64,000 nt of DNA from Iphione sp. A-MEVVRFRX5 (GCA_976226885.1 OZ320320.1:29264001-29328000), one strand, 5' to 3'. Shown: positions 10,914 through 62,903, counted from the stretch's first letter. Numbers and translations: made by a program. The notes: generated by a model from the letters alone, not told the origin.

Positions 10914-11050
10914 CTTGCTGCATGGTCTGGAGCTGTTTGGAGCTGGCTGGAGCAGTGTGTCCTTGCTGGAATCCAGGAGAAGAGAGATTTCTTCAGCTGT
11001 CTGTAGCTCCTTATGTAAGAGAGAAGGCCCAGGTTGGGCGGAAAATCCTG

Positions 11051-11358
11051 CCGACCTCTTCCAATACCTTCTCTAAGGTGTGAGCAGATCAGAGGAGTGG
11101 TTGATACCTCCGATCTTTCCCACCAACCTCTTCAGGGTGAGAGGTATACATCAGAGAGGTCGCTGTTGACACCTCCGACCTCTTCTGCCACCTTCTCCAG
11201 GGTAAAGGAACATCAGAGAGGTCGCCGTTGATGGCTCAAACCTCCTCCGCCACCTTCTCCAGGGTGTGAGCAGATCAGAGAAGTCACGGTTGATGCCCCC
11301 GACCTCTGCCGCCACCTTCTCCAGGGTGTGAGGTATACATCAGAGAAGTCATGGTTCA
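11051..11358. repeat. Degenerate minisatellite, about 5 units of 59-65 bp, inside the transposon 5' region
   Basis: Recurrent CCACCTTCTCCAGGGTGTGAG..ATCAGAGA.GTC...GTTGA...CCGACCTC units. Confidence 0.9.
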
Positions 11359-42300: not shown

Positions 42301-45300
42301 CTGGGAACCAGCACGTATGCGAGTGGGCGTTTTTATCCCCAGATTCACCCGGGGTGAGTGTGCGTTCTTGAGTGGGCGATGCCCGGAGCAACGGTACGCG
42401 CTGGTTGTCTAGCTTACAGTGCTGACAAGGCAGAATAAGGCATGTTCCAGAAGTAAGTAAAAACCAGAGGCACAGAACCTATAAGAGTTATGTTAGTTTT
42501 CCGTACTCTGCAAGCCTGGAGATTGCAGTGTGGAAAAGACATGGAAGACACTGAGGGCGCAAACACTTATAAAACTAACATTACTTATTACCTAATTCTG
42601 TTCCCCAAGAGATTTCCAAGTTCTCTATTTCGTAACAGGGTGTACGAGGACATGGATGTCGTGACCTTAATGGTTGCCATTCATATAAACTCCATAGTAT
42701 CTACATGTAGCACATGTAATATGTATCATCGTATACATCATTCTATCCGCCGGATTTCATTATAGAACTATCATATAAACAGTTTTTTTCCTTTTTCCCA
42801 AGTTATTTTTTAAGGGACGACCCAACCAGTGCTTTTTAACACCAAATCGCGAAAGGTGAAACCGTTATGCGCACATTATACCCGGAACCACCTCGACCCT
42901 CCTGTAGTCGTTACAGAAGGTGCCCCCTACCAGGAACTTAGATTACCAGCTACCTTGCAATAACTGAGCATTCTTGACTGGCAGATCATCGATAAAATGT
43001 TTGGATGTACAGGTGGCGTGTCTAAGAAGGGACTAAAACGCATACTGGACCATTCATAATTTCTATTCCTTTTTGTTTACCTGCACATGTTTATATGTCA
43101 ATAATCCCGATAAACCTGTTGAAGGCGGCTTCGGCTGGTGACTGAAAAAACAGTACACGTGTTTCCTTCAGCAGACCTTTCCTTCCTGTTATAATCAACG
43201 TTGGGTAATAAGCGTTAAATCACTCGGACAAACCAACTCCTTCAATACCGCCACCATGAAGCAGTCCTTACATTAGAGTACCGTGAGCCCGTACCTGGGT
43301 CGCCATGGTAACCTGTCGTGCTATAACGCCTGCTATTCCTAGAAGCCAAGAAGGCAGGGCCAGTAGGGCGGCCCCGAACTAGGCCACGGGATTGACGGCT
43401 GCAATAGTAAAGAACGTGTTAAGACGACCAGATTAAACACAGGGCTAGTTATGAAATAGTCAGGGACCATTTACAGTGGTGACTTCATAATTAGATTTGT
43501 GTGAATCTGATCGTCAAATTGAGAGAGAAAGATAGGAACACCGTTCAAAACGAGACTCTTCATAGACTGATCTTATGACTTTAATTTATGATTGGAACCA
43601 GGCGTGGTAGTTTGTGGTATGGTATGAGGTATGTGAATTATTCCAAAGACATTCATCTTAAACAGTATAGTTGGCAATAAACATTAGGCTCCGGAAGAAG
43701 TGCAAGCATTAATGTGCACTTTGGTGGGTTTTCCACGCACAGTTGCATATTATAGATCTGTCTATGCAACCCTTTGTGTGCCCATCGGTCTGTAACCTTT
43801 TGAGGCATTCATTAAAGCATTTCCATGTCATTATTTATAACACGTTCGGAATGCATAGATTTAAACAATGGTTGTACAAGTGCCTTTTCTTCTGTGTATC
43901 TCTCAGTCACCTGGAATGCAAGCGTCCACAGAAAACGCCCTATTCCAATCTGTACCAAAATCTTTGGTTCCCATACAACGTGTGTGGTTCTGGCGGATTT
44001 AGAAGACAACCATAGATCGCAAACTTGTCTCTAAAGGGCGAGGAGCTTATCATAGAAAATCGTCATCAAAGGTGTCCTAATTGACGAGCTGTGGATTGAC
44101 ATATTACGAATAAATACATGTATGTGGACGTGCTCTGAATCTGGAAGTCTCTCAGCAAAATGACGCTCAGAGACGGTTATAAGTCTATGGGATGTCGACT
44201 CTCAATGGTTTTGGCATCGTAAGAAAGGTTGTGGCCACCCAGCCTTGACAAATTGTCTCAGGACTGACAACTGCACAAGGTGAGACACCAGGTACACGTT
44301 ATTATGAACCAGTTTGAGCCCCTGCCTTCATCCTACCTCCAATAGCAACAAGTTAGCGAAAGGGCTAAAGAGACCTTCGGTTTGTTTACAGGTTGTGTCA
44401 CTGGTGCCGACCTATCCTTGGGCACCGTGCCACGAATCCTGGAGGTATATATGCCAGTGTTTGAGGAAGGTGGAAGGGGTCGGTGTATTAAAAGAGCGCA
44501 TGGTGTTTCTGAGTGAACAAATATTGTGCATGTCTACCCAGACGCAAAGAGAAAACGTTTACCAGCATGAAGTGGAGTTTACTACAGTGCCCAAGCTGAT
44601 CGAGTAGACGATAAAGGGAGCTCTGGCTGGCTTTGTAAGACTTTTCATGCAGTGTGCATTGGCAAAGCCAGGTCACCAATTCAAACCTTTCTTAACATTT
44701 CCACAGCTCATTATTACTCAACGTGTGTTGATGTACGTCGCAGACGTAGAAAGGCGCAGAGTGAGGATGTTTATGCCAGTGGGCGGAAAGTTGGACCACT
44801 ATCGCTGGGCGTATGGGAGAGTCGACCCGGGTGGGAGGAAGGCGCTGATATAGAGGAGTGGACTATTTCTGTCTCACCCAGGGATGATTCCCGTGACGTA
44901 GTTCAGCCGGCTGCTGCTTGCGCCTGCGCCGTGGATGCCTCCGCGGGGAAGGGCGGAGAGGTGGGGGGAAAGGAAGGTCAGAGCGGTCCTTCTGCTGGGA
45001 GGCAGGCTCATGTGAGAAAATACGGACGTGTAGGGGAGGCAGTACCAGCAAGGAAGGGGTCTTACCAGTCCTCCACCACCCCTGCCCGTCTCACTGCAGT
45101 ACAGGGGCAGGGGAGTACCTCAGCCAGCCTACATTGACTCGAGCAGCTCCAGCTGCGGCTGTTGGCGCTGCTGCTGTAGCGGTATACATTGCTGCTGCTG
45201 CCGCTGCTTCTACTTTCGTCCTGCAACTCAGAAACACCAAGCCGACCGGGGAACTACACCTAAACACTTGTATCCTTCTCCCTGAGACAATCCCAGAGCG

Positions 45301-48300
45301 GTGACGACGATCTGGGTACAGTGGGGCAGCGGGGAACAGAAGGAGTACAAATTACAAGTGTTACAGAGCTGCCGAAGAACCGGCTTGGTTGATTCTGTGT
45401 TTTTCGTCCCGCAGAGGCAGCTCAACAGCTGAATCAGACGGCGAGATGGTGTTCGTGGTGGCTACCCACACCATGGTGGTGGAGGCGGATGCCAACCCTG
45501 ATGGCACGCTGAAGCGCAGGCCGCCGGCCAACTTACCTAAGAGCGATCTACGCGGAAAATGGCAGAAGGAGGATCCCCGTCTGGCTGTTGTACCCAGCCA
45601 GCAAGCTAGCAGTCGGCAAGAAGGTGGTTATACCATCACCACTAAGTCTACCTCGCTCAGGACGAGGGAGGACTACCCGACATCCAGCCCTGGGGTCCGC
45701 TTGGGAGTAGTGGACACCTCCCCGGGCCTTGGGAGTGGCCTAGGGCGCGGCCGCTCCCTCGGTAGACGCGGAGTAGAGGGGGTGCCTACTCGGCCCCGCT
45801 CCTGGTCGGCCGGTCGCAGAGCATCCCTGGCCACCACGGGTGAACTGCTCGCTCATCGGGCCGGCTACACTACGGACTACATGGAGCCTATAAGTACGGT
45901 GACAGAGAAGTTCAAGAGTGTCACCACACGCACGCCCATCCGCACCGGATCGCATATCGCGCCCCGCGAAAGCCCGCCGCGTGAAATGCTGTCCCGTTCG
46001 TACTCCTTGCCAGCATCTGCCATCGAGACAGACCGCGTGCTGCCCAGCGCGGCTGACCTGTATTCGGGAGTGACAGTAACCCGCCGACCACCCGTCTATT
46101 CCTCTGTGTATAGACCGCACCGCCTTCCGCCTGAAACCGAAAGGACCATCGCCATCGCCAAACAGGCGACTGCGGAGGCCCAGGTCTATGGATCCCTGGT
46201 GCCGTACCGGAAGGGCGCGGCCGCGGCTGCCGCCGGCTATCCGGAATATACAGCGATGAGCGCGGCGCCTCGCTCCCCGCGTTCGGTGTCAGCCTACCCG
46301 ACGCTGCATGCGATGGGTGTTCCCACCACCTTCCGCGGTTTGCGGCTCATGGAAGCCAAGCACGAAATGGCTTCGCGCGACTATGACATTCCGATCCGGC
46401 CCTACGAGCCGTACCGGCCTCCGGAGGTCCGCATTAGACCGGCCGACATACCCATAGCTAGGCCCGCGCCGACCCCGCGGAGGATCACACCTCTGGAGCC
46501 CTTTAAGTTGCCCAAGGGCTTCTTCCGGCGTCGCCGACATTCACTTCCGGCCCGTCCTGTCGAGCTGTACACCGACGATGAAGGCTACGACATGTACACA
46601 GCAACACGAGCCAAATTCCTTACTTCCTCACCTAGGCGGACTCATGTACCTTCTGTTCAGGTAAATTTGGATTTTCCCTCGTGTGCCGTGCCTCTCCATT
46701 CTGCCGGAAGTCATAATCCCGTGCGCGCGCAGCCACCAGCCCAAGAGCGAGGCCGTCGCCGGGTATCCGTCTGTTAAGATCTCCATCCGGTTCTTGATGT
46801 TCCTCGCTGTGTGCTCTGCTGTGTAGTTTCGGGTTGTTACAACGTCAGAACAAGTATACATCCAAGGTAGGCTCCAAGCAGCCTTGGTGTCTTCCAAGAG
46901 TGGTTGCATGCCCCATCCTACTACTGTCCAAAAGGCATCTTAACAGGACGGTGATGAGCCTAACCGTCGGCACAATCCTGTTCAAGTGATTACTTCAACC
47001 CATGCAATAACTGCTTGGTGTGTTTATTGTCCCAGAAAAAAACAAAGAAAACCTTCGATTTTTTTGGTGAATAAATAAAATTAGCGATAACATTGACCGC
47101 CTCTCAAAATGCAGACTGTGTAGAACTACTCGTCCATGTATACATGTCCGCATATATGGTGTATATGTGTCTCTCTGTTCGTCTAGATCGTCCAAAACTC
47201 CACTACTTCTTTTCCTTCTCTACACTTTCTACGTACATCCTTAGAATGTCTCCTATCATAAACTTACTTCCAACAAGACCAAGACAAGCATCTTAGACTC
47301 CTTTCTACCCAGGTTACACGGAGTATAGCCTTCTGCAAATAGCATCAAAATATCATCTATCAATAGAAACTGGCACATGACTACTGTCAGAGACCCCACT
47401 GACACTGTCAATAAAGATGACCTTGTACCACGCCTACATGCATTAGTCCAGACCGGTGAGGCAAAAATATCTGGCCTCCAGAAACAACTCCTCTCCATGT
47501 GGCGACACGTCAAAGTTGAAGATAATGGTATGAAGAGCATATTTCGAAAGGTCTGTTCTGTGATCCCTTTGCAATATACAAAGCAGAAATGTCTGTTGTA
47601 TGTATTTTGTCTGATATTCAAGAACATTTTGAACACGAATCCCAACTCTAACAGAGCATAATATTTTGTTGAGCATCTTCTGAAGGTTGGATTCTGAACA
47701 TAATGGGTAGGCGCATTATACTATATTTTTTCGGGGACCTATCTTTCTGTAAGATAAGACACTGCGCGGTTGCCTTCTCTGGCTTGATTAAATCTTCCTG
47801 TTGGTGAATACTGGCCTACATGCCTAACAGGTTTCATCAATAACAGGAGCGACTGCTTACACGGTAAACAGTTCTTTCGTCGACTCCAGTCTACCCTCGA
47901 GCAAAAGGTGTATGCCTGAGCATATTATCTGTTTGTGTTGATTGGTTTTTTCTCTGTACGGGCAATGCGGAGGCAAACAGATGCAAAAATGAGCTCGTCT
48001 AGTCCACCAGGTTTGTTTTTGTATGTATGAGCTTCTTTTGAAACGAACGGGTAATTCCCTTCTGGAATTATTCTTTGTGTCTTCTATCTTTTCAACAAAA
48101 ATTGATTAAGGGAAATGAATGACCGAAAATTAGTGGAAAAGGCAAGGCAGTGTTTCAAAAGCAGCTTTATGGTGTCGAGCTTAAGAATGCGGGTAAAGAC
48201 AGAAAAAGGTAAATTGATAAAAACAGAGCAACAGAACCAAAGGCAAAATGGGAGACAGAAGGGAAAGGGAAAGGGTAGAAAGGTATGAAGGAAGAAAGAC

Positions 48301-51300
48301 AGTGGGGCGACAGAGAAGAAAGGAAAGACAGAGAAGGTGGAAGACAGAGAGAACGAGGAGTAGAGCTACTCCTCGCGGGTGGTAGATTAGCTCAGCCAAG
48401 GGTAGTCAAGGGTTCCTATAAATACTGACAAGCTCAGGTTTCCCCGCATATCTTAGCTATGTACCTCCTCTATAGTCCATGCAGTTCCCTCTATGTTCTA
48501 GAGACTGCATTAGTGTCCGTACGTAGGCAGTAATACACAGAATAGGTTAGGTACAAGTTTCAATGTCGGGAGCGGTAGTCTATGACACTGAATCGAAGGA
48601 AAAGCAGCCTGGGTTAACCAATATGGTATTTGTAGGGGTTTTTACGAGACATAATTTTGCGTCCGTAATGGGGAGAGAATACCTCCTGATTATTGAACTG
48701 AGATGATCTCTTAAGTTTTCTGCGGAATTGCACATCCATTGTTTTTTTTGGTATGGAGGCCTTAGGTCGTAAATCCAAACAGCGGAAGTGTTTAAAGACC
48801 AAGCTGCACAAACCCTTTTTCTTTTTCAAAAGTATACACAATATGTATCAGGGGAGTAACGTATGGTTGAATCTAAAGGAGAGTAAAGTAGAAAAGGCAG
48901 TTATAGGCAACGCTTGAACATTATATCATCTGTAATTACTTCAGTGTATGAAAGAGGATAGGCTTTCAACTAATTTTCCTTTTTAATCGCACTTCTCTGC
49001 TGCTATGAAAACATTATAGACACATGATAATTCTTCCTCATGGGCTGACCCGTACTGTTCCATTGGGATATCATCATAACAATAGACACTGATTTCAGGA
49101 TAAATCAAAGCCACAAAACTGATTAACGTTATAAGAACTTAACGGTATGTAAGTCTTCGTGCACAAAAGGAACCATATTTCATTTTGTTTTGTTAATTTT
49201 GGTTCACTGCCTCCTTGCTGACGTTCCCTGAATGCCCCTACTCTGTGTATTATGAATTTTATACTCAAAGTCGAATAATGCATTCAGTCACCGTGGAGAC
49301 ACGATTCGAAGGGCGACGCGCCGCCTGGAGGTCTTCTATAGGTGTTAACCAATCATGTGACCGTCTGCTTCCATTTTTCTCCACCAGGCGTACGAGCACA
49401 GCGTGCCCACGTACTCGGTGACCCACGTGCCGCGTTCGCCCACCGTGCCGCGCCGCTCTCGCGCTGCTGCGATCGAGGTGAGTGTCCATCTTTATCAATC
49501 CGCGGCTGCTGAACTGTCTCTGCACCTCTTCTTCACCCATACCCACTCAGAGATCTTCAGTTTGCTCATCTCTCATCTACCTGTAACGTCATTCGTCATC
49601 AACCGTCACCAAAAAGACTGATTTCAAAATATGCTAGTAAAACATGAAGTCACAGTAGAAATGCCCCAAGAGACTTCACTTTTGACCAGCCTGTTTTCTT
49701 GTCCTCCTGAAGTTTATTTCCTTAATTTTTAAGATATGATGGATTGTCATCTTTGGTTCTGAAAGTCTCGGTCTTTATCAAGCTGTGGTTTCCTATAGGA
49801 GTTTTTCATTCAGTAGGTTTCTGCTGTAATTGTAAATGCCTAAGCCTATTTCACTGATTTTTGAATTTTCCCGCTTGTTCATGCAATGCCAATATCGTTA
49901 TCTATAGGCAAAAACCATACGACTTCTTCACTCTTTGTATTATGATTTTTTCCTTTTACATTTGCTGATCGATTCTTAAGAATAGTGAACACATTCTGAT
50001 ATTTCAGACCAAACGGAGTTCTAAGGTGGGTTATACTAGTGAGAAAATTAATGGAGTTTTTGAATTTTTATTCAATTGTTTTTCACGAAATTTCGCCAAT
50101 GAAATGTAGGAAATCTGCTTAATTTTTCATACTGTCGCTACATTGTTTTTCACGGAGCTGTGAACCAGCCAACCTAGATGAATTTAAGAGAAATAGTCCT
50201 TTTACATGCCCCCCTTTTAATGCTTAAACTAGTCCCTAATTGTGGGCCTCCTGTGTGACCATCTTGCTATAAATACATGCTCGCATCACGCACGTATTAT
50301 GCACTTATACACACATGGATACAAGACCTTACTATCCATGTGAATGTATTTCTCGTCCATGCTCATGCCTCTCTATATACGAATACGCAAACGTGAATAT
50401 CGATGCTGTGCCTGCTTTTTCACGCATACGGATAGGTCGCCGAATGACGCACATGTGGAGGTTAGGGCTATAGTCCAGATGGTATGTACACTAAGGTGAT
50501 AACTATTTTTTTTCGGGTTTTCGCTGAAGGCACGGCTGGAGGCGATGACCATACCGGACGTCCCCGTAACATCCTATGCCGGACTCCGCTCCCGCGCTGC
50601 CGAGGCCCGCAGTAAGATTGACCATCACAAGGTGCTGCTCGACCGCTACATGCCCGTTCGCCTGGGGCCGGAGCCCGAAGTCGGGTATGAAGTGGAAAAA
50701 AAATATGACGAGCTGGCCGCCAGGTACACTCGGTAAATGGCAGGATGTTGGTGTGCCAAGCTGAGCGGTCGCAGTCGCCAGCCCTTTAAACAAAAAAACA
50801 TTGTCCCGAAAATCCTTTTGGTAAACAACGAACTTGTTCGTAAACCCACTGGATAAGTGGTATTCTTGACCATGCTTGAAATAACGCCGAAAATTCGAGC
50901 CCCAAGTCAGCTGCTTTTAAAATGACGCGATGTGACAATGGAAGAAAAAAAGACCAGTGTGTTTTTTTTCAAAATACACGTTTCATAAAATTTTGTTCTA
51001 AATTCTATTGATCTTTCATTGATCACATGCCTAAGCTGGACCGGCTTTAGTTGTTCTAACCATTTGACAAAGTGTGATGTAATTCATCAGGTACTCTTGA
51101 GTTGATAGGCTCAGATTGACCTGCCGTCTGTATATTTCTAGCTTCTTCGGGAGGATAATATGGCCAACACCACTCCGTTAAACATTTACCGTATGGCTTG
51201 GTAAAGTGTTCCCACCCATTTTCACCCTCCACATTTACCGATAGTAACAGTTAACATGGCCTGGCTTTTCATGACGCCCGCACTCTCCCGCCAATATACC

Positions 51301-54300
51301 GATATAGAGCGCACCAACATCCTACACCATTGGTTTTTCTTAACTACATGTAGATAGTAAAGATTAGTCATAGAGAAGGTAAAGCCAACCCCAGCCGTTG
51401 TTGGGCTGAGGTGCTTTGATAACGAAGTATCAGTGGTTGATATTGATATCTAACGCTGCTTCAAGTTGATACATCTTAGGTGAGACATGTCATTTGAGAA
51501 CATGTTTTAACATTAATGTGTACGATTCATGATGTTTTCAAATCATGGTGGTTTCTGATAGACCGACTAGAATGCACGTCACCTTGAAATATACTCTTTA
51601 GAAGAGATGAAAACACAACATGAAATCTCAAAGTTTTGACTGATAACCACTTTTTGAAAAAATTGTCCCATTTTATCGTAACACTTACAATTCACCAAGA
51701 TGAGATGTACGTTAATGAAATCCGCGACAAATAATTCAGAATAGCTAGAGTAATTTTGAATTATGGTCGTACCAACAATTACCAAAGCATGCCGTATAGA
51801 ACTTGGTATATTGCTGCTACAGCTTGCTTCCCGCCCCTGGCAAGGGAAGCCAACCCAGCTTCTTTATCCTAGGTTAGTTCTTTATCGCTTGTATCGCAGC
51901 AAACCACTGGACGTTGGCCTTCAACTCAAGGTACACGTATCTATTCACAATTGACCACCCAGCTACAGAGGATTCTACTCTAAATTTTCTTGCAATGTCC
52001 TCTGATGATGTGTGTCTCGTTTCTTTCCCATATTTTCCAAATTTTTCGCAACTATCATTTTTCCTATAAAAATAATCTTATTTTCATTTTGCCTCGTGTA
52101 AGTTGGCTTTCTCCATTACCATAAGTGGTCTTTGGTTTCTGTTAAAGTCTGCGTCCAAGTCATCTATATTGGTCCTCTCTGCACGCAAACTTTTTCTTAT
52201 CTATACTGTCTACATGTTAACCACACTATCACTGCCCTGTAGCTGGGTTGCGTCGCTCTGTCGCCACGAGCAGAGCTTTCTCTTGTCACTAATGACAGCT
52301 GCTCGGCCGGCACATCTCTTGTACCGTCTAGAATGCCGGAGCTGCAGCGCTACAAGGGTCGGCCCTCGCCCGCCCCGGCTCCTAAGGTGACTCCCTACCG
52401 GCCGGCGCCCGCCTCGACGCGCAGGAGCAGTCTGCCCCCCTCCGAGCCCAGCAGGGTAAGCCACCGAGTGCCACCTTCTCCAGTATGATGGCGCCAATAT
52501 GAACTTGTGACATCCATGGCGCCAGGCGCTGCGAATATGTACTTGCGTCAAGACTAGAGAGACCATCCCGCACCTTTCATAGTCTGCACATACGGACGCT
52601 AGGCGGTGCCGTAGGTCTCGAATAAACTTAAAACGCCATGTACTTCTGTACATAATGCACCCAGTGCGTATCGAAGTGATGAGGCTGAAGCTGCAAGTAA
52701 ATCTCTAGCATTAAATATACATGTTACTACATAATCGTCTGCGTGAAGATAATTGTATCAGAAAAATTTCAAGATATTGTTGTCAATGTTGTTGATGTTT
52801 CGTTTGTTAATGTGACAGTCCGGCCACCTGTACGCTACTCGAGACAGAAGGGTAACTAACCCCTTTATCTCCAGCGCTGCTCGGTGATATAGATGTTTAA
52901 CAGTAGCAATATTTATCACATTTCAGCACCAGGAACATTGATCAAAATGTGGTACCAGTAATGTTCGCTTGACCTTGTGGTGAGCAGTGCTTGCCATTCC
53001 TTGGCACCAACATTGGGTACCACCCCGTTCATACCGGACACAGAAATGAGACTTGAATAGCACCAGTACATATCTCTATCCTAGGTACAAGTTCAGTGGA
53101 TTTATTGTCATAAAGGCAATTTAGAGACCTCTGCTATTTCATTCGGAGGCTATTTAGGATAATTGAGCTTGTGCCAAAGCAGCCCACAAGCCACATCGTT
53201 TCACCTGGATGTAGGCAAAGACAATGCAGACGCCTCGGTTGGTCGCTGATGTCCAAACGGGTAGGCAAATGTGTGGCCCACAAAATTAAAGACAGCCCCC
53301 CCCAGAGGGTTCATGCGATACACAGCAGCATGGCTCTGTTGTTGATAGTATTTTCTTACTAAAGTCATTCTTGATTCGGTTCGGTTCTTAGTTATTACAT
53401 TTATTATTCTCTGTTTTGGTCATTTGCGTCTGTACTCACAGTGCACGTTCGGACATCAACGCTGAGGCTAATGCTTTGGAAATGGTTCGGCGCATGTCAT
53501 AGTTTCCTCCATCCTGTCATGTCCATCAAAAAATACACACGGTTTATACTTCTTTATGGAAGGGCCGCATGGAAAAGGTTCCCGAGCGCATGAACCGTTA
53601 CAAAAGAATAGCCTATTCATCCACTGTTGCCAATTGGTGTTTGTCGTTCCCATATATTTAAGCCAAAAAAAGCACCACCTAGCGCCATTACTTTGGGACG
53701 GTTGTGAAATAGTCTTACTAAACAACAAGCGCGTTCATTAAAATCTTATGCGTAGCTCATGCTTTCCCATTAGTCAGTGTGTGACCTTCTTAACTGGCTG
53801 ACAGACCATTATAGTGTCCCGGTACTAGTGTTTAACCGAAAGACCCGAATTAACATGACCTTACCTTTTTGGCAGGCGGCGCCGCAGCGGCCTCAGAGAC
53901 CTCCTATGTCTGATGCTCGCAAGAGAGCCCGTGAGGTTCTATGTAAGACACGGAAGGACCCCGAGTACTTCACTTATTAAACACGTCTACTCGTATCCCA
54001 CCCACGGTGAGTGCCTCTCGTTATCTCGCTCTATTGTCCTTCGATCGGGTCTTCTTGAAATTCTCCATTTCAGCCTTCTCCCTCTCGATTTTACAGACAA
54101 CAGATGTGCAATATCAGTGAAGGATAGGTACGCATTGTCATCTTATCTTCCCTGTCTCTTTTATTTTGTCTTTCAGAAGCCTGGTGGTCACCAGCTGGCT
54201 TCATCACGTCCTCGTTGAGATCCAGGATCCCCTCTTACATGATTCGCGATGACATGGTTCCGATTCGTCGTTACTGGAAGAGATACACGGGCGCCCCCAC

Positions 54301-54322
54301 CACCTACTACATCAGTTATTAA
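27302..54322 (+). CDS. Uncharacterised multi-exon gene; low-complexity R/Y/P/S-rich protein. Reference model join(27302..27391, 31080..31155, 32717..32862, 34545..35351, 36396..36584, 38736..38921, 40405..40500, 42343..42353, 45415..46660, 49388..49477, 50530..50732, 52332..52455, 53876..53980) = 3369 nt, 1122 aa; alternative last exon 54177..54322
   Basis: Thirteen mostly GC-rich islands, each with AG/GT boundaries, chain with matching phases into one open frame. Composition is consistent across exons and RxxSxP motifs recur. No recognisable globular domain. Confidence 0.75.
27493..27502 (+). promoter_or_regulatory. CArG (SRF) box CCTATTAAGG about 100 bp into the first intron of the orphan gene
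   Basis: Perfect CC(A/T)6GG; several such sites are expected by chance in this window. Confidence 0.25.
27986..27995 (+). promoter_or_regulatory. Canonical MEF2 site CTAAAAATAG between candidate first exons of the orphan gene
   Basis: Perfect match, but a chance occurrence in 64 kb of AT-rich DNA is not unlikely. Confidence 0.3.
29746..29977 (+). CDS. Orphan gene, candidate alternative start B: join(29746..29749, 29937..29977) = MAPDPWEPKKKPKPE
   Basis: ATG G|gtgagg, a 187-nt intron, then tag|CC and GAG|gtaagt. Ends in phase 0, compatible with exon 31080. Confidence 0.55.
31080..31155 (+). CDS. Orphan gene exon SCCNDPSDKMVYFATRRCRSVPPTV (not in the ORF track)
   Basis: tatttcag| ... G|gtaaga, phase 0 to 1; contains RCRSVP. 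Confidence 0.75.
31300..31705. repeat. Degenerate TG/TA-rich simple-repeat tract
   Basis: About 400 bp of gtgtatatg/gtatgt variants. Confidence 0.85.
32159..32490. mobile_element. Older, inverted copy of the same MITE family as 58418..58742
   Basis: Both ends align in opposite orientation (GGCC.AAAAAA..TGTTTC.G.TAACAT...GAAAAA.TAGAGG.TCG; GACCCGAC.GACCCT). The TSD is degenerate. Confidence 0.6.
32717..32862 (+). CDS. Orphan gene exon VEVNYDYGIG...LLRDISSRM
   Basis: atttcag|TC ... ATG|gtaaga, phase 1 to 0; GC-rich island. Confidence 0.82.
34545..35351 (+). CDS. Orphan gene exon, 269 codons (YRLDYDNVKV...RAQSLPAR...SAGVQE)
   Basis: Within the 302-aa ORF 34500..35408; acag|TAT and GAG|gtaaag; strong GC3 bias. 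Confidence 0.88.
35460..35522. repeat. (CAC/CAA/CAT)n trinucleotide repeat
   Basis: Directly visible. Confidence 0.8.
36396..36584 (+). CDS. Orphan gene exon ETSSYTQPAW...RRASSVPP...YRYEE
   Basis: tctcacag|GAA ... GAG|gtacca (weaker donor), phase 0-0. Confidence 0.8.
38650..38696. repeat. (CCTT)n microsatellite just upstream of the acceptor at 38735
   Basis: Directly visible. Confidence 0.9.
38736..38921 (+). CDS. Orphan gene exon KDWMPYYHK...RRAGSEPP...LSRLE
   Basis: ctccag|AAG ... GAG|gtaggg, phase 0-0. Confidence 0.82.
40360..40500 (+). CDS. Orphan gene exon; either internal (acceptor before 40405, RELKSGLEDPYYDVEDYF...SDLG) or an alternative first exon from ATG 40360; in-frame alternative donor after 40530
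   Basis: ctcttgcag|CGG, GGG|gtgagt and CCC|gtaagt. In-frame stop upstream of ATG 40360. Confidence 0.75.
42343..42353 (+). CDS. Candidate 11-nt micro-exon (ATT CAC CCG GG) of the orphan gene
   Basis: gtttttatccccag|ATTCACCCGGG|gtgagt. It provides exactly the phase 0 to 2 bridge needed between 40500 and 45415. Confidence 0.55.
44744..45137 (+). CDS. Candidate alternative or degenerate exon of the orphan gene (RRKAQSEDVYASGRK...SASLH*)
   Basis: Phase-2 acceptor tcgcag|A, GC-rich, 130 open codons. The reading frame and donor are ambiguous. Confidence 0.4.
45415..46660 (+). CDS. Orphan gene largest exon (1246 nt; RSYSLP and RRHSLP motifs)
   Basis: Within the 462-aa ORF 45389..46777; ttttcgtcccgcag|A and CAG|gtaaat. 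Confidence 0.88.
49388..49477 (+). CDS. Orphan gene exon AYEHSVPTYSVTHVPRSPTVPRRSRAAAIE
   Basis: tttttctccaccag|GCG ... GAG|gtgagt, phase 0-0. Confidence 0.85.
50530..50732 (+). CDS. Orphan gene exon ARLEAMTIPD...KYDELAARYT(R)
   Basis: gctgaag|GCA ... CG|gtaaat (phase 2). An alternative phase-2 donor lies after 50723. Confidence 0.83.
52332..52455 (+). CDS. Orphan gene exon (R)MPELQRYKGRPSPAPAPKVTPYRPAPASTRRSSLPPSEPSR; 124 nt (3n+1)
   Basis: ctcttgtaccgtctag|A ... AGG|gtaagc, phase 2 to 0; this frame is not in the ORF track. Confidence 0.78.
53876..54006 (+). CDS. Orphan gene 3' exon; frame 0 ends AAPQRPQRPPMSDARKRAREVLCKTRKDPEYFTY* (stop 53980); the +1 frame is open to the donor at 54007
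   Basis: cttttggcag|GCG acceptor and CG|gtgagt donor. Confidence 0.8.
54177..54322 (+). CDS. Orphan gene last exon; coding as (E)AWWSPAGFITSSLRSRIPSYMIRDDMVPIRRYWKRYTGAPTTYYISY* in one isoform, 3' UTR in the other
   Basis: Long pyrimidine tract plus cag| acceptor; 48 open codons with the same R/Y/P composition as the other exons. Confidence 0.65.
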
Positions 54323-56782
54323 ACAGCACAACGCCATGACGTCAGCCAGGCCCGAGGTGCGACGTCATGAGTATTGACGGCCCGGAAACACGTCAGCGTA
54401 TTTAAGATCTCCACCCACCATTTACACAAAAAAAGCTAAGAAGTAACCCCCCTTCAGCCATGTCCTACCAAGCCCCTTGTTAAATTTTGTTGTACGCGAG
54501 GATGGGATCTCGACGTGACCGTTAGGTCTGGTGATGCGTTGATAGATGGATAGTGACCTGGAAGAGTGACACGATGGGAAACAAGCAGCCCCATCTCCCG
54601 CAATTGTTTACACCAGTGGCAGGACGAATTATGTTATTCCCGTTATTGGCTCAAAATATAAAGGCTTGAGTATGCGAGGGCCCAGCCAAGATTAGACACA
54701 TGGACCGTTAATGAGAGGAGAGGTCTTCAAATGATGATGGACAATTTCTTTCTTATTCGACAAGCTTTCGGAGGATTCCTTTCATGGAAATTAGGCCAGA
54801 TATGTGTATTGATATAAGGTTGCCGCCACATTCGCGTTGTCTCTCCCTATTTCTTTTTTTTTCAAATGGAAGACTACTCGACTTGCGGCGAAGCAACGAT
54901 AGCTCGTAGAGTAACAACGATTACAAACTAGTCATGACGAAGAAATGTATGCACCTGACAAGACGAGATTATTTGTGTATAGTATTTTGTGGCGCCTTAT
55001 GTGATGCTTGCAGCGCCAATGGCTGAGTGATTGCCTCGAATGCCTTCAATTAGGTGCACATTGTGGCAAAGGTAGGGCTTCTGCTTCCAACGTTAAAACG
55101 GCTCTTAACCTGTGCAAGACGCATCCCTGGGAGGTATTTCTACAAAAAAGAAAAGCGGCAGGTGAATGGTCCCATGTCGTCCCCGTTCCCCAAATGGAAT
55201 AAGTGGCGTTTTCCATCGAATATATATGAAAAACAAGCAATTCAAAGCCTCAGACGAGAAAGGAAATCACGAGCGAGGAGTAGGTCGGACACTGAAATAC
55301 TGAAAGAGCTTTGTTCATGTTAGTTACGCTGACTTTTACTAAAGAGCTGGTCCTGCCCTTATAACTGCCCCATATAAGGGTGCCATCACCTCTTGGTTAT
55401 TAGTCATGGTGAAAATCTGGGTACAGGAAGTCGTTCCGCCGTATAATATGCTCTGTGTATTCATCATCGCCCAACGACAACAATGGAAGACAGTGCGTCG
55501 CCAAAAAAGGCAGTGTTGTACAAACACGTTTGCTCCCTTGACCCACCGACTGTATGCTGCTCGTTTGCATTAATTGGTTCATGTGCTTTTTCTACTTATC
55601 TGTGTATTCGAATGAAGAAAAAGATGTTATCACACTGCGCTAGTTCCATATGAGTCAACCAACATGCGCTCACCATTAGCAGAGAGTACGTCATGTGCGC
55701 CAGGCAGGTGATTCCCAAACACCATGCAACCGTGTACTGCGTGTAGAGGAGAACCATCGCACCACCAACATCATCCACACGTTTCACGAGTAGTACCACT
55801 TTTATTACACGGTACTATCCACTGCAAAGCTGTAACCAGCTCGAAGTCACTGCCTTTAAAGAGAATAAATTTAGACTGACAGATCGAGATGTTTGGATGT
55901 TGTCTTCCTTGAGTTCTTTTACCAACGTCACCAGCTATATATAATCTATCGCACATATATATATGTACATGGGTTTCCAATATAAGTTTCGAAGAATGTA
56001 AAGACAAAGAGGAAAGCAATGTAAATAATGTTCTCAATTTATTGTCTCTCTTTCCATTTACATGATTGGTAGGGCGACGAGGAATATGCAAAAGCAAATA
56101 CATTCATATAAAAGCAACCGTTTTATTCTTTTGGCCATACTGCTGATAACATTTGTATATTACATATAATTATATATGCAACCTAAATTGCTGAAATCTG
56201 GCAGACATCATGAAACACTCTGATCGTAAAAAAACATTCATATATTATCTTAGGAATAGTAGCATGCTTCTGGCCCAGTGCTCATGAGTAACGGACAACT
56301 CTTCCACGCTCTATGTTATTTCTAAAAGATTACGGTCGCAAACGTTAAAGAAGCACCAGTGACACTAACATTGTAGTCATATAAACGCACACATGATATA
56401 AGCAAGAGATACATCTCAGTGGGATGGCACAAACATTAGCATTGGGCAGCCCAATAGATTCCAGTAATATACATATCATTTCAAATAAGCAACGAAAGAA
56501 GTCTCAGGACAATTAATGAAATGTTCATGTAAACACTCGTGCGTGAAACAATAACATGGCAACCTTTCCAATTTCCTGCGAAGAACACGGTTAATGAAAT
56601 GTTCTGACATGTTTGAAAAAAAACTCTAGAGCTTACCAAATGGCACTTATGTTGGTGTTAATGTTGGGATGGGGAACATACCTGTATGAAATGTAATATT
56701 TACAGTAATTTGGATAGAACTGTGATGACGGTATTTCAAATGAAAAAAAAAATGCTACGTGATGAAAATGGGGTCAGTCGGG

Positions 56783-57807
56783 CTAGAACTTTGTGACGAT
56801 GCTTGGTGCTGGATACGCCATCTGTGAACTTTGTTGAGGCATATCGTGCTCAAAAGCAGGGTTGATATACTCGCCATTTTGCATGCTACTGGCAAAGTCA
56901 TTAGAACGACCAGACACCGTGGTCACTTCTGTTAAGCCGCCATTTTTGGCTACCATGGACAATGCCTTGTCTCTCTCGGTGCCCGGTCGGTAGCAGATGT
57001 TATCGCAGCATTTGCAGAAGAAACAGGCTCCAAACATCCTGTCGAGAGGTGCAAGCGAACGCAGTGGCTCGGGAAGCCACATCCACGTCCGCAGTGTCTC
57101 CGGAAGCATCTGCGGTCGTTTCTTTTGCAGAATGTTGACAATGATAACGAAAATAATTATTAGCACTACGGGTATGCCAACCGCTGCCAGGACGTACCAC
57201 CCAATCACGGAGAGTGCGAAGACAATGGCGGGAAGCGCGAAGAATATTAAGATGATATAGAATATAGCAAACCATCTGTAATCGGCTGTTATGTTACCCA
57301 GGCCCTTAGCCAACTTGATCGGAACTTTCCTCATGAATGGGACCGGATACCATAAGATGATGCCGACGAGATTGAAGAAGAGATGACACATAGCAATCTG
57401 CATGCTATTCCTGAAGCTGTCGCCTGATGTGGCGAGAGCAGCCAGCACGCTGGTGCAGGTAGTACCGATGTTAGAGCCAAGAGTGAGGGGGTACATGCGT
57501 TCCAGGCTCACCATACCTATACCCACAAGTGGTGTGAGTGTGGAGGTAAAAATCGAGCTGCTCTGGACAAGGATTGTCATTCCAGCACCGATCAGTATGG
57601 CGACGTAACCCGTCAACCAGGACAGGTAGCCTGGAAAGTTGGCATTGATAACCTTCTTGATGACGAGTGCCACCTTGCCCTTAAGCATGGCCTGAAGAAG
57701 CTTGACGATGAGGAGAAGGCACATGGTCAGGATGAGAAGCGAGAAGACCAGGAGGACTCCGCCGATGACAGCGTCGGGCCAGTCGACTTGGGAAAATAGA
57801 GCCTGGC
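56783..57807 (-). CDS. SLC34A: SLC34A coding exon 7 (1025 nt, entire C-terminal half)
   Basis: tttcaag|GC acceptor; the ORF track 56783..57937 contains the second QSSS repeat, [22 protein letters not shown] and YRWFAIFY. Confidence 0.96.
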
Positions 57808-58025
57808 CTTGAAACGGGAGAATTAAAACGTATGAGTTCCTACATTGCAAGCTAAACAAAAACAAACAACCGTGTCGTCTTATAAACTTTGTAAAGTATG
57901 AAATTCTACTGTACAAAGATGACAGGACATTTCCCAAACGGGGTTTCTACATAAATACTGTCAATGCAAAAACATAGGGCTGAGAGAGAGGGAGAGAGCA
58001 AGATAGGGAAAGAGGTGAGAGAGAG

Positions 58026-58081
<56 letters not shown>

Positions 58082-61000
58082 TCTTCTTCAAAGGAGTTGC
58101 ACCTGGTCTGAAAAAGATTCCTCTTACCTCCTACCAAAATTACATAATTCTGACACGAAAAGATCTCAAAGGGTATTTAACAAAAGTATTCTTATAAAAT
58201 GGCTTTTAGTTGTAAACTTACATCTCTCCTTGGTGACGTTCACCGCTGTAGAATTTTCAGGATTATGACAGACCAATCCCTTGCAAAATCGTTTCACTAC
58301 TGGACATATTGCTTCCCCTTTGGCAGCATCCTCAATTACTTTACTGTCGATCTGAACATGAAATAGAGATCAATCTAGGCGACTGAAAGGCCTTCAGAAG
58401 GAGAAATGCTAGGGTAAGGCCTAAATAAAAAATACATGTGTTTCCGATGACCCGACCGACCCTGGTTCTAGCCAAAAAAGGAATATTTTATTTTGTTTTG
58501 TGAATATCTTTATAATAAAAAGAGATAGAGACACATGCTACACACAATTTTGTCCCTTGAGTCAGAAACTATCATTTGATATAAATTTTAGTAAAATATA
58601 AGCAGTAGAAGTGATATTATCATATAATTAGTGGATTTCAGCATCTGTTAACATAGCAAAAAAAGAAAAATAAAAAAATACCATCTGTTTATCGACCCTC
58701 TAATTTTTCATTATGTTACTGGAAACAGATATTTTTTATGCCTAATCACAATACAGGTCGCAGGTTATTTTATGTTAACTGATATACATGTACATGTTAG
58801 TTATTAGGACAACTGCTCATGGGTACCTGGATAATGAGCTTCGTGAATGGTTCTGTTATGACCTTTAGGAACTTTTGATTGCTCCCCGAGGTTTGATGTG
58901 CATGGTCCATTATTACATCGGTCAATTTTGTCAGGAAACCTAAGAATAGAAGGAACGAAGTTAATCAGCAAATCAATCACTAACGACAGAGCTAAATGGG
59001 GGGACATACGAAATCATACTGTCATATCTCGCAAATCCAGTTTACAAGAGTCGTGCATTTCTGGCGGACCATTGTCCTAATATACAAACATCTTACCAGA
59101 CGTTTTCTTACTGATTGGTCTGCAGATTGGGGTCGTTTCATAAGTCAGAACCGTTATCATTAATTTTTCATGCATTATGATGAAATTCCCATTTTACTAA
59201 TCCAACATAAACCAGTAGGTGACGAACCTGTTTTTGTCAGGGATAGTACATGAGTAACTAACATATTCCTTTTTTCTTAATTTTTTCATATTTCTCCCTT
59301 TTTTCTCACCGGAAGAATTTTTGCATCCTTATCTATGAAAGAAGTGTGAATAAAACATTCAACTGAATTCAATTCAAACACGGGAAGGGTTTTTCTCACC
59401 AGAAGCTACTTCTATCGGTAGAATAACGAGAACGGAGAGCCAGTTGAACATATCGTGCACGGTGGCGCCCGCAAACGCCCGCCGGAATTCATTTTTGCGG
59501 CCAGTGTGGCCCATCGAAACGAGTGTATTGGTGACAGATGTACCAATGTTGGCCCCCATGACGATGTACACTGCTTGGCTGACTTTAAGGACTGAAAGAG
59601 GGAATGTGGCCCATAAGCATTGGAAGTCTTGGCAGATTGGCAACATTAAATTTAGCATCTCAGGAATCAATCTTGTAAGTTGTGCAAGCCCTCCTGGACC
59701 GATAGCTCTGCAAGGGGACATTATAGTGGCCCAGTCTTATATAATTATGTATGTATGGTCCAACTGACAGCAAAGAACGAAGACATATGAAGGGCAATAG
59801 GTACAGCAGAGATAACGTTCCAGATATAGGTCGTAGCGAACTAGGATCTATGATCGCCCTATCCTTGCCTAAATTACGTATCGAGTTTATCTATGTAAAA
59901 AAATCGTTTCAAAGCTCAGGTAGATTAGAGGCTTAGTATATACAGAAGTGTAGAGTAATCTTCGATATCGTCAACTCATACTCACTGCCTGCGGAGACCA
60001 TGGTGACAACGATGGCAGTAGACGTTGAGGAGCTCTGCACCAGAACAGTGACGAGAACACCTATCATCAGGCCACAGATAGGGTTACTCAGGATTTCACT
60101 GTTCGTGAAGATCTGCCCCGCCGCTTTACCTGCAAGCAATCAAGCCACACTCGCCGTTGTTGAAATGGATCCTAGTATAAGGGAAAATCTTTTTTTTTAA
60201 ATTCAGGGTCATCTCACCCTATCAACATATAGTACAGTATTGTTGAGAAATGTGTTAGAATATATACCCATGTATCTAACGTAGTGCAAGAACAAAATGT
60301 AGTGAATGGGGTGGTTCTGCTGTAGTTTCTACCAGTAACTGAGCCACACATAAGCTTAACGAAGCCTTAAGTTTTGGTGATGTAATCTACTGCTTTAACC
60401 CTGGGAAAATTAAGTACATGCAAAGTTACTAACACCAGAACCGCTTGCACCGTAAAGCAGCATAGATGTAGCCTTTGTTGAAATCTTCTATAAATCATGT
60501 TATGTGTCTGGGCAATATCTTTTCCCATTAACTCTTCGCACTTAATCTATTTGAAGTTTACTTCGCGCCACCAAGAGCAAGAGGCCATCATTCACCAATG
60601 GAACGGCAGAAATTCACGTATGTGCTAAGAAAAATATACACTTCTATATCCTATAGGCAAAAGAATGATAATACCCATGTATTACGTAGTAGGGTGACGG
60701 CGTGCACATATCATCGTGTGCCGCCCGCTATCAGGTTTGTTCATTCCATGCAGTATGCTCGAAAGGGACAGGTTGATGTGGGGATAATCGAGCACACATG
60801 CACATGCCATAGATTACCTCAGTGAGCTCGTGCCGCAGGTACATCCCCAAGCCTTATCAAAAAGAGTACACGTGTGTCCTCCATGATAGTATACAGGTCA
60901 CTTACATATATATGTATGTTTCCTTTGCATCGCTATCGTCTATGTTCAAATCAAAACCACCAAATATGTATAGTAGAAATACCCTTGTTGCCTCTCATTG

Positions 61001-62459
61001 TAATACTCATATCATTCATAGGACCTCGTATTAGGGACCAGAAACGGACTTCCGGACCTAGCCAATCATACTTGGGGAACGGACCTGCGTCCCAGGCTAA
61101 TTGTTTGTTCTGCTGTTAAAATACCACACAACCTCATAAGTTTCTACGAGAGTACATCGAGGCTTCTATTTCCTTGAGAACGTAAAGCGTTTGTATGAAC
61201 TTCTGCTAAATTCATTACTCGCTGTAGTGTCACTAAGCTATGTTTTCGTTTATCTTAGGGATGAATAGAGATGTACTTATGTATAAGATGAATTCTTGTA
61301 GTGACTGGGAAGAATGGTTGTAACCAATAACAGCGTCCAATCCTCGTCATTAAGGTGATGAGGTTATCAAATTTATCAACTCAATGTAAAGATTAGTGAA
61401 TACACGTTGGGGAAGGTGCATTTCCCAACCCTACTACATTTCAAAAGCGATCGTCTTTACTGAAAACAAAGAAAAGAACATTTTGTGTAAGATGTGAAAG
61501 CCATGCTTACCACCAAGAGCTTTGAATGCCGAACTCAGAAGATCGATGGAGCAAATGAACATGTAGAGGAGGCCCAGTAGAAGAACGAAACGTCCGATAT
61601 ATTCCCATAACACGCGTTTAAACTTGCCGGCCGTCGACAGTTCTAATATTGAATAATTGAAAAAAATTATTGGACAATGAAAAATGGGGAAATGTTGACA
61701 AGAAGGAGCACAGGCCCCAGTTACGTGTGTAGGTATGAATCTAATAGATACGAAAAATGTTTCATTGAAACATGACTTCGATGGCTACATCTATGACAGA
61801 CAATAGACAGTCTACAAACGCATAGGCTACCTGCAATCATTTCAAACTAAGTTTCCCGATAACGGCAGAGTGGAACATGTTCTTTCTTTATTTACATACT
61901 CGTTGCGGTCCAAGGAGGGGTATGTTTGTAGACATCTGGTGTTAGTAGGTTGTGTGTATTTAAACCGGTTTTGTCGAAAGGATACGTGCTGGCGGAGCCA
62001 TTACTAACACTATGGTAAATACACTAGTGTACTTTGGGAGGGGTGGGAGTTTTTCTGACATAAAAACTCAATGAAGACCTAATACTGACCAAACAACAGT
62101 TGTTTTCGAGCAATTTGTTTGAGCGAGTATTCTACATACAAACTAATTCAATGCTCTATCTGTTTGGAGGAAACCGTGTAAATGAATATTCTGCATGGGT
62201 TCAATAAATGGCCTTGCACAAAATTGCTTTTTAGCAACAAAACTACTGTTGCCAGCCCCATGTTTCCTAAATAATTATAGGTATGTCTGTAAGATTGATG
62301 TGTGGCACATATACTGAACCTACCGCTCCAAGATTTTTGGGGAATGATGGTTTCAGTCAAGGCCCAGGGGTCCTCCTCTTCCTCCTCCTCCATCTTCTCG
62401 TTCACGACAGGGTAGGGAGGAACGGCCATCTTATCAGCGTATTGACTCTCGGAACCCAT
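56783..62459 (-). CDS. SLC34A: Type II sodium-dependent phosphate cotransporter (SLC34A/NaPi-II family), complete spliced CDS join(62459..62324, 61642..61511, 60129..59986, 59591..59400, 58939..58827, 58351..58222, 57807..56783), 1872 nt = 623 aa + stop
   Basis: All introns are GT-AG with matching phases and the joined frame is open. Family hallmarks are present: [25 protein letters not shown], two inverted repeats [18 protein letters not shown] and [33 protein letters not shown], a Cys/N-glycan extracellular loop (NST, NVT), a C-terminal Cys string ([11 protein letters not shown]) and a PDZ-type end TKF. Paralogue number cannot be assigned. Confidence 0.96.
57982..58078. repeat. (GA)n microsatellite in SLC34A intron 6
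   Basis: About 25 pure GA units at 58029-58078. Confidence 0.95.
58222..58351 (-). CDS. SLC34A: SLC34A coding exon 6 (extracellular loop)
   Basis: cag|ATC...AGA T|gtaagt; [43 protein letters not shown]. Confidence 0.9.
58418..58742. mobile_element. About 325-bp MITE with TAA TSD and GGC..GCC termini (PIF-Harbinger or Zator type)
   Basis: TAA|GGCCTAAATAAAAAATACATGTGTTTCC ... GGAAACAGATATTTTTTATGCC|TAA; lies in SLC34A intron 5. Confidence 0.72.
58827..58939 (-). CDS. SLC34A: SLC34A coding exon 5
   Basis: tag|GT...CAG|gtaccc; [38 protein letters not shown] matches the LKVITxPFTKLI motif. Confidence 0.92.
59400..59591 (-). CDS. SLC34A: SLC34A coding exon 4
   Basis: cag|TC...TCT G|gtgaga; [23 protein letters not shown]...[26 protein letters not shown]. 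Confidence 0.95.
59986..60129 (-). CDS. SLC34A: SLC34A coding exon 3 (first QSSS repeat)
   Basis: cag|GT...GGC A|gtgagt; [48 protein letters not shown]. Confidence 0.95.
61511..61642 (-). CDS. SLC34A: SLC34A coding exon 2 (TM1; not in the ORF track)
   Basis: tag|AA...GGT G|gtaagc; translates [44 protein letters not shown]. Confidence 0.93.
62324..62459 (-). CDS. SLC34A: SLC34A coding exon 1 ([10 protein letters not shown]...[20 protein letters not shown])
   Basis: Acceptor atttcag|GA-ATG and donor G|gtaggt. EDPW is the typical SLC34 N-terminal motif. Confidence 0.88.
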
Positions 62460-62772
62460 TCCTGAAATCTGTGTTGATCCACAAACAAAACAAAAATCAA
62501 CGTAGGCATAACAACACAGCATCATACATTCTTTATCACTGACTCTGTCAAGGTGGATCAGACACATTGTAAGACAGCGGCAGACTTCCATCTCCTACCT
62601 TTCTATTCAACAAGTATTCACTGCATGGCTATACTATAGATTGGACTGGATAAATTTAAGATTTACAGTTCACAGTTAAGGTATTCCATTAAAATAGGAC
62701 TGTATATCCGGCCCACTCAGTGTCGTGTTCGAGCACCCTAAAGACAGCTGTGTTATCGGTTGGCGCACCTAT

Positions 62773-62903
62773 NNNNNNNNNNNNNNNNNNNNNNNNNNNN
62801 NNNNNNNNNNNNNNNNNNNNNNNNNNNNNNNNNNNNNNNNNNNNNNNNNNNNNNNNNNNNNNNNNNNNNNNNNNNNNNNNNNNNNNNNNNNNNNNNNNNN
62901 NNN
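62773..62903. other. Assembly gap (131 N) in the SLC34A first intron
   Basis: Run of N. Confidence 0.99.

Follow-up and report, generated by a model that had tools for sequence, protein, structure and literature searches.

Can one exon near the 3' end of a gene be read in two frames, so that retention or skipping of the exon before it decides which of two C-termini the protein receives? The gene that raises this question lies on the plus strand of a stretch of 64,000 nucleotides (nt) from Iphione sp. A-MEVVRFRX5 (OZ320320.1:29264001-29328000). This whole stretch is referred to as the window, and all coordinates are counted along it. The part of the gene at issue consists of four exons, e1 to e4, which are listed in the Table together with the other features of the locus. 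The candidate cassette exon is e2, and the candidate dual-coding exon is e3. From the sequence of positions 50400-54500 we reproduced every element on which an original prediction for this locus had been built: the exon boundaries with their splice sites and phases, the two translations and the 26-nt gap between stop and donor. With e2 included, e3 is read in frame 0 as AAPQRPQRPPMSDARKRAREVLCKTRKDPEYFTY and ends at a TAA (53978-53980), which is located 26 nt before the donor CACG/gtgagt (slashes mark splice junctions). With e2 left out, e3 is entered in the +1 frame. Translation bore out that this frame is open over all 43 codons of e3 (RRRSGL...YSYPTH) and that it crosses the 54006/54177 junction in phase 1, to end as EAWWSPAGF...TTYYISY at a second TAA (54320-54322). 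The upstream donors other than that of e1 (46660, 49477 and 52455) are all in phase 0, and the sole in-frame path into e4 through known exons is therefore e1-e3-e4. The tail encoded without e2 comprises 92 residues and is rich in Arg and Tyr, and the tail encoded by e2 and e3 comprises 76 residues. We regard it as moderately probable that the conserved non-triplet exon e2 switches between these two C-termini, the second one being encoded by the +1 frame of e3 together with e4.

If this is correct, the main mRNA would contain e1, e2 and e3 and would encode the conserved basic tail that ends in PMSDARKRAREVLCKTRKDPEYFTY, the e3-e4 intron being located in its 3' untranslated region (3'UTR). Such an mRNA would escape treatment as a carrier of a premature stop, since the intron starts 26 nt past the stop codon. 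In a minor mRNA e2 would be skipped, and the phase-2 end of e1 would then meet e3 one base out of register; the +1 frame would pass the frame-0 stop, cross the following intron in phase 1 and end in e4. The likeliest effect of the switch would be that the PYRPAP and SDxRKRAR-VLCK motifs are dropped, and that an aromatic C-terminus stays. Neither isoform is a predicted substrate of nonsense-mediated decay (NMD), as the frame-0 stop lies less than about 50 nt from the last junction and the alternative stop lies inside e4.

An open +1 frame is not significant in itself. When the e3 frame-0 peptide was re-coded with the gene's own codon usage and the +1 frame was checked for stops, this frame was open in 67% of the trials for the window and in 56% for the orthologue, and off-frame open runs of 66-84 codons are found in the first exon of this GC-rich gene. 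The idea that the openness alone is telling was rejected on these grounds (chance probability 0.67). Because the open frame matches the chance expectation, the case for coding in the +1 frame has to be built on sequences other than the window.

A word search with the first exon led to two open reading frames (ORFs) with 36-37% identity, P0001 and P0002. The whole locus is held by L004, a 1.4-Mb contig from the European Nucleotide Archive. In the window, the studied gene is followed by a convergent gene for an SLC34-like Na/Pi cotransporter (56786-62594, minus strand); the same neighbour (Pfam PF02690) is located downstream in L004, and synteny is confirmed because both loci have it. A third species, represented by contig L047, was found by a search with e1. 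The introns are largely unalignable. The length classes of the exons are nevertheless kept: e1 measures 203, 197 and 200 nt in the window, L004 and L047, each time 3n+2, and e2 measures 124 nt, 112 nt and either 127 or 136 nt, each time 3n+1. In L004, e3 is 134 nt long and the orthologous e3-e4 intron spans 1605 nt, compared to 170 nt in the window. The most conserved domain of the protein family is encoded by e1 (...LDRYMP...KKYDELAAR), which shows 70-82% protein identity to L004 and L047. In all three species exactly 26 nt separate the frame-0 stop from the donor of e3. No stop interrupts the +1 frame of e3 in any of them, and it continues open to the e4 stop in the window and L004 and up to the contig limit in L047. 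The proposed escape of the frame-0 isoform from NMD is consistent with this spacing, while the validity of the 50-nt rule in annelids and the position of e4 as the last exon are assumptions. Likewise, the expectation that both frames stay open in orthologous loci held for the window, L004 and L047, but the +1 frame is closed in many other members of the family.

The alternative frame is conserved at the protein level in the two segments that it does not share with frame 0. In the 26 nt past the frame-0 stop, the +1 frame reads IKHVYSYPTH, IKLLYSSPGY and IRHLHSYPKF in the three species, one Ser being kept through the codons TCG, TCC and AGC and one Pro through CCC, CCA and CCA. The sum-of-pairs BLOSUM score of this segment is 75 in the +1 frame versus 19 and 42 in the other two frames. 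A shuffle of the alignment columns, which keeps the nucleotide conservation and counts the stop-free results that score at least as high as observed, gave P=0.006 for the three species. The e4 peptide of the window was matched by tblastn in L004 at the syntenic site, 1.6 kb past e3, behind tttcag/AG and in the same phase. Among all loci and the whole window, the two e4 sequences are each other's best hit, whereas blastn between the window and L004 left e4 undetected at the nucleotide level. The local protein score of e4 is 65 in the phase-1 frame and 15-27 for the other plus-strand frame pairs, and a score of 65 was not attained in any of 5000 peptide shuffles. The column shuffle, applied to the first 19 ungapped codons (EAWWSPAGFITSSLRSRIP / ESWSPPLGFVAHTMRSIIP), gave P=0.006 among the stop-free shuffles and P=0.002 overall. 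The length of e4 differs between the window (146 nt) and L004 (170 nt) by 24 nt, that is by 8 codons, and in both species the other two frames carry early stops. The GC content of e4 is 0.52 in the window and 0.51 in L004, compared to 0.35-0.47 in the flanks; the GC content at third codon positions (GC3) is exon-like (0.70 and 0.60), and in L004 the GC content drops to 0.35 past the e4 stop. Three other sources of the e4 signal were rejected: a gene on the minus strand, where the frames score 16-26; a duplication of e3, considered for the similar ends ...YFTY and ...YISY (P=0.88 and 0.96); and a direct reading of e4 from e2 or e1, which meets stops after 13 or 24-33 codons and scores 20-27.

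Judged by its sequence, the gene is a member of an uncharacterised annelid protein family. When 1.84 billion representatives were searched with a profile of e1 in HMMER, 50 hits were obtained, of which 18 had E<1e-10, and the family proteins match the window by tblastn. The named family members come from Capitella, Paralvinella, Lamellibrachia and Ridgeia and are listed as hypothetical proteins. The window carries the motifs that define the family, namely LDRY[LM]P and [KR]Y.EL..R in e1 and, encoded by the exon after e2, SD[TA]RKRAR.VLCK...DP.YF.Y directly followed by the stop. No significant Pfam match was obtained for the exons or for seven family proteins of full length, and Rfam gave nothing in positions 44000-57000. 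About 24 family proteins carry the frame-0 tail of e1, e2 and e3 (...EL..R/MPxL..PYxPA...SDTRKRARxVLCKxKGDPxYFDY and stop), and for this reason inclusion of e2 is regarded as the canonical form. The frame-0 tail of the window is 60-77% identical to the ends of P0008, P0017, P0018, P0020 and P0048.

An mRNA without e2 is present in a relative. Protein P0039 is encoded on L005, a 1356-nt intron-less Logan contig of RNA type from a distant family member, in which e1 is joined exactly to e3 and the +1 frame is read. The frame-0 e3 peptide of this contig (...SATRKKARSVLCKIRGDPHYFDFS) is still conserved, and the gene must therefore also make a form that contains e2. In L006, a paralogue of L005 from the same run, e2 is present. 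The annotated models of Paralvinella and Lamellibrachia lack e2 though the genomes of both have it; these models look partly artefactual, and one of them takes a cryptic donor inside e3. More generally, the models at L007 (Paralvinella, KAK2145285.1), L008 (Lamellibrachia, KAI0216125.1) and L049 (Ridgeia, KAK2184868.1) look wrongly built: they divide the gene in two ahead of e1, they drop e2 or e3 though present, and they use a cryptic donor inside the conserved SDTRKR codons or take non-coding e4 as coding.

Several observations weigh against a switch of this kind. The best-surviving alternative, which we nevertheless consider unlikely, is that e2 is constitutive, that the e3-e4 intron is a plain 3'UTR intron near the stop, and that the openness and conservation of the +1 frame and of e4 reflect constraint at the RNA level combined with chance. 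The canonical tail of the roughly two dozen family proteins speaks for this, as do the chance-level openness of e3 and the presence of e2 in six of the seven family cDNA contigs (L006, L009-L012 and L028; it is absent in L005). In a survey of 38 further loci, found with a 5-sequence alignment, nearly every genomic locus had a G/GTA donor 6-58 nt past the frame-0 stop, even where the +1 frame is closed, and a comparison of cDNA L010 to the Paralvinella genome (L007) showed that the 3'UTR intron after the stop is spliced in an mRNA containing e2. The post-stop intron is thus old, and its closeness to the stop fits the NMD argument. The +1 frame is closed by TGA in most of the oligochaete-like 'CKVKGDP' loci; it is open in all loci of the 'CK/RTK' type, ending soon past the frame-0 stop in Tyr-rich tails (RRFSYQY, DYYYY and NRYYK, each followed by the stop). 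In siboglinids, the equivalent of e4 is conserved at the nucleotide level but carries 1-nt and 7-nt indels, because of which it is taken to be UTR only. A coding role of e4 throughout the family was rejected on account of these indels and of the e4 peptides, which match nothing in 40 other loci; from the sequences compared, coding by e4 appears to be specific to the lineage of the window at most. The comparison of e4 covers two species, the L047 contig stopping 690 nt after e3, and the proportions of nonsynonymous (pN, 0.40) and synonymous differences (pS, 0.44; Nei-Gojobori method) between the window and L004 do not show the classical ratio of purifying selection. The pS of e4 lies under that of the other exons, which suggests constraint at the nucleotide level, and a low pS combined with a pN like that of the bulk of this fast-evolving protein would fit a second role of e4 as 3'UTR. 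Against a constitutive e2 stand the column shuffles, which retain nucleotide conservation and yet, in the predicted frame, gave P=0.006 past the frame-0 stop and P=0.002-0.006 in e4. The detection of e4 in L004 by tblastn and not by blastn, its coding-like GC and GC3 values with the drop past its stop in L004, and the closure of both other e4 frames in both species also argue against it.

A second alternative, likewise unlikely and ranked just behind the first, is that e2 skipping is real but represents splicing noise or a non-functional by-product, the shifted tail being tolerated and not used. This possibility bears on the constraint within the overlap. Between the window and L004, pS is near saturation (0.58-0.73) in the exons other than e1 and e4. 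In frame 0 it amounts to 0.58 in e3, equal to e2 (0.58) and close to the N-terminus (0.63). The suppression of synonymous variation in the overlap that the original prediction had named as a check was thus not seen between these two loci, and because e2 and the N-terminus have a matching pS, no separate constraint on the overlapped +1 peptide is detectable. Moreover, the +1 tails of different family lineages cannot be aligned with each other, and in a survey of human genes most alternative-frame peptides are described as disordered by-products (PMC13160074). Frame 0 is strongly conserved throughout the family. Noise is argued against by the alternative frame, which keeps its protein-level conservation downstream of the frame-0 stop and within e4 although synonymous divergence is nearly saturated. 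The invariance of the 26-nt spacing in three species argues against noise as well, as does the +1 tail ...RRFSYQY, in which L007 and L010 differ by changes of the synonymous type (TCT/TCA, CAA/CAG and TCC/AGT).

It is quite improbable that e4, and e3 in its +1 frame, are translated from another entry point, be it an undiscovered phase-2 exon or promoter in the longer 5' part of the gene or an alternative splice site: two ORFs further upstream (32707-32862 and 34539-34715) imply unmodelled exons, and two candidate e1 donors together with conserved intronic boxes indicate complex splicing near e1, but both e1 donors are in phase 2 and the remaining modelled donors in phase 0, the +1 frame of e3 has no conserved ATG, and the sole e2-less transcript found, L005, is a precise join of e1 to e3.

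A switch of C-termini by e2 is thus the reading that we prefer. The search for sequencing runs listed none for this Iphione genome, and hence no junction read for 50732>53876 or 54006>54177 in this species, which also weighs against the switch; that e2 is skipped here, that the product is translated and that it has a function is what we infer from the sequence comparisons.

The region around the e1 donor offers hints as to how e2 inclusion might be controlled. A second possible phase-2 donor, CCAG/gtacac at 50723/50724, is located 9 nt 5' of the donor CG/gtaaat and leaves the frame logic unchanged. Its use would yield ...ELAAR/MPEL..., the same as the family consensus, and the donor at 50732 adds three residues (YTR; the split Arg codon moves). 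Both candidate donors are conserved in L004 and L047, and both lie within the 35-nt element listed in the Table, which is invariant in the three species despite saturation at their synonymous sites. Separately, we observed that the pS of e1 versus L004 is 0.37, well under that of the other exons, which hints at RNA-level constraint inside e1 (50530-50730). In box A' of the intron after e1, ATTTACCG is complementary to the CGGTAAAT donor, and a decoy-like TTG/GTAAAG comes after it. Box B' is located 590-780 nt downstream of the donor, and a stem of 14-15 bp between it and AGGATGTTGGTG is possible in all three species. Both arms of the stem are invariant, so that covariation is absent. The order of the boxes keeps the two pairings from nesting, and competing structures at the e1 splice site are therefore suggested. 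We also asked whether box A' terminates a coding exon hidden in the e1-e2 intron, and rejected this, as no consistent acceptor, length class or open frame was found in the three species. It is a speculative and rather unlikely extension of our model that the 35-nt element and boxes A' and B' form competing long-range RNA structures that set donor use and e2 inclusion, the frame switch then being a regulated decision for either the basic SDxRKRAR-VLCK tail or the tail rich in Tyr and Arg, and one conserved across deeply diverged annelids.

Table. Features of the locus, in coordinates of the window unless a relative is named. Slashes mark splice junctions or codons split by them.
Feature	Position	Strand	Sequence and splice sites	Remarks
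First coding exon, short form	45446..46660	+	ATG MVFVVATHTMVVEA...; phase-0 donor TTCAG/gtaaat	Orthologous ORFs P0001 and P0002 share the start Met
90-nt exon, phase 0 to 0	49388..49477	+	AYEHSVPTYSVTHVPRSPTVPRRSRAAAIE	Splice sites read; weak orthologous matches in L004 and L047
e1, 203 nt, 3n+2	50530..50732	+	Acceptor ...gctgaag/GCACGG; phase-2 donor CACTCG/gtaaat	
Invariant 35-nt element	50722..50756	+	AGGTACACTCGGTAAATGnnAGGATGTTGGTGTGC	Spans both e1 donors and the first ~25 intron bases; three-species alignment
Box A'	51184..51206	+	ATTTACCGYATGGCTTGGTAAAG	Invariant in three species; 5' part complementary to the CGGTAAAT donor, 3' part a decoy-like 5' splice site
Box B'	51312..51323	+	CACCAACATCCT	Perfect complement of AGGATGTTGGTG in the donor-proximal element
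Starts of element, box A' and box B' in relatives	L004 9052-, 9690-, 9831-; L047 1800-, 2272-, 2393-			
e2, candidate cassette exon, 124 nt, 3n+1	52332..52455	+	R/MPELQRYKGRPSPAPAPKVTPYRPAPASTRRSSLPPSEPSR; acceptor ...cgtctag/AATGCC; donor AGCAGG/gtaagc	
e3, candidate dual-coding exon	53876..54006	+	Acceptor ...tttttggcag/GCGGCG; donor CCCACG/gtgagt	
e3-e4 intron, 170 nt	54007..54176	+		3'UTR intron if e2 is in; phase-1 coding intron if e2 is out
e4, terminal exon, 146 nt	54177..54322	+	Strong acceptor ...gtctttcag/AAGCCT	Coding only in phase from the e3 +1 frame (E/AWWSPAGF...TTYYISY, stop)
Segments of the predicted alternative tail			...YSYPTHEAWWSPAGF... and ...YTGAPTTYYISY	
TGACGTCA sites	54337-54395; L004 11325, 11435, 15737, 15919; L047 3634			

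Exons that are read in two frames have precedents. In CDKN2A and GNAS one exon is read in two frames that encode unrelated peptides; there, the use of different first exons or start codons determines the frame, and the overlaps extend over long stretches. The Iphione locus shares the two-frame exon with these genes, whereas its frame would depend on the skipping of an internal 3n+1 exon, and the overlap is limited to the last ~34 codons. In XBP1, IRE1 cuts the mRNA in the cytoplasm at stem-loops and a short non-triplet segment is removed. The resemblance to the present case is that the loss of a non-triplet piece changes the frame close to the 3' end, so that one C-terminal tail is exchanged for another; the difference is that ordinary spliceosomal GT-AG sites are involved here. 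CDKN2A (INK4a/ARF) and GNAS (XL-alpha-s/ALEX) are among the examples of overlapping frames mentioned in passages of PMC1868773 and PMC2329644. The statement that dual-coding exons are rare is outdated: non-triplet cassette exons create dual-coding C-terminal isoforms in both C. elegans and human, with hundreds of events in C. elegans (Athavudeen, Issac & Norris 2026, PMC13247117), and 1296 human genes are reported to have alternatively spliced dual-coding regions, which have a mean length of ~95 nt and are mostly confined to one exon and mostly C-terminal (Goubert et al. 2026 preprint, PMC13160074). As in the cases of PMC13247117, a non-triplet candidate cassette exon precedes an exon with two frames, both stops are predicted to be non-NMD, and two C-termini would result. 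Those cases rest on RNA-seq, NMD mutants and reporters, whereas the e2 isoforms are deduced from the sequence and the orthologues; moreover, unlike in those cases, the alternative frame of e3 passes the canonical stop and crosses a further intron into an exon that would be UTR in the main isoform. Like the human regions (PMC13160074), the overlap (102 nt) lies in one exon and would rewire the C-terminus, and the alternative peptide seems disordered and of low complexity. The human cases mostly meet an early stop and about a third of them are predicted NMD targets, whereas at the Iphione locus the alternative frame exceeds the canonical one in length, and the part of it beyond the overlap is conserved as protein. 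The locus thus adds to the known dual-coding class and is set apart by its deep conservation and by an exon that is both UTR and coding.

If RNA data confirm the switch, this would be a clean invertebrate case of a frame-shifted terminal exon under selection over a very deep divergence, with the same 146 nt being 3'UTR in the one isoform and translated in the other. It would also give a first handle on an uncharacterised annelid-wide family, with two C-termini of which one is without the most conserved motif of the family. For annotation, the lesson is that a short exon past an apparent terminal stop can be coding. The evidence also suggests that current annelid gene models are mis-split at this locus.

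With respect to the 5' part of the gene, in-frame stops are located just 5' of the Met of the first exon in both relatives (the P0001 and P0002 loci), and the exon with the ATG at 45446 may serve as an alternative first exon in the clade of the window only. The two upstream plus-strand ORFs named above resemble N-terminal parts of family proteins, namely the SRRQDxxLL motif of P0017 and residues 72-130 of the Capitella protein P0020. By this resemblance, the 5' end of the gene probably lies 13 kb or more beyond the modelled exons.

Palindromic TGACGTCA motifs, which resemble the cAMP response element (CRE), cluster just past the e4 stop in the window and L004 and past the e2 donor in L004 and L047. 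Their count is far over the 0.1-0.3 expected per locus, and they may be candidate enhancer or promoter sites or RNA pairing partners. A TATA-like TATTTAAG follows the cluster at about 54400. Between the two convergent genes we found conserved non-coding blocks (window 55524-55594, 54771-54812 and 55342-55395; compared to L004 17242-17315). The best of these, with 89% identity over 75 nt, includes GTTTGCATTAATTGG, a sequence similar to an octamer plus homeobox site; Rfam gave no match to the block. The blocks could be either a 3'UTR element or an enhancer. On the minus strand at 9755-11072, long ORFs of 231 and 195 amino acids show, by eye, motifs like those of a pogo/Tigger-type DDE transposase with its DNA-binding head (...LQPLDQGIIQNLK...), and this region is probably a transposon remnant. 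Finally, a run of N is located at 62773-62903 of the window.

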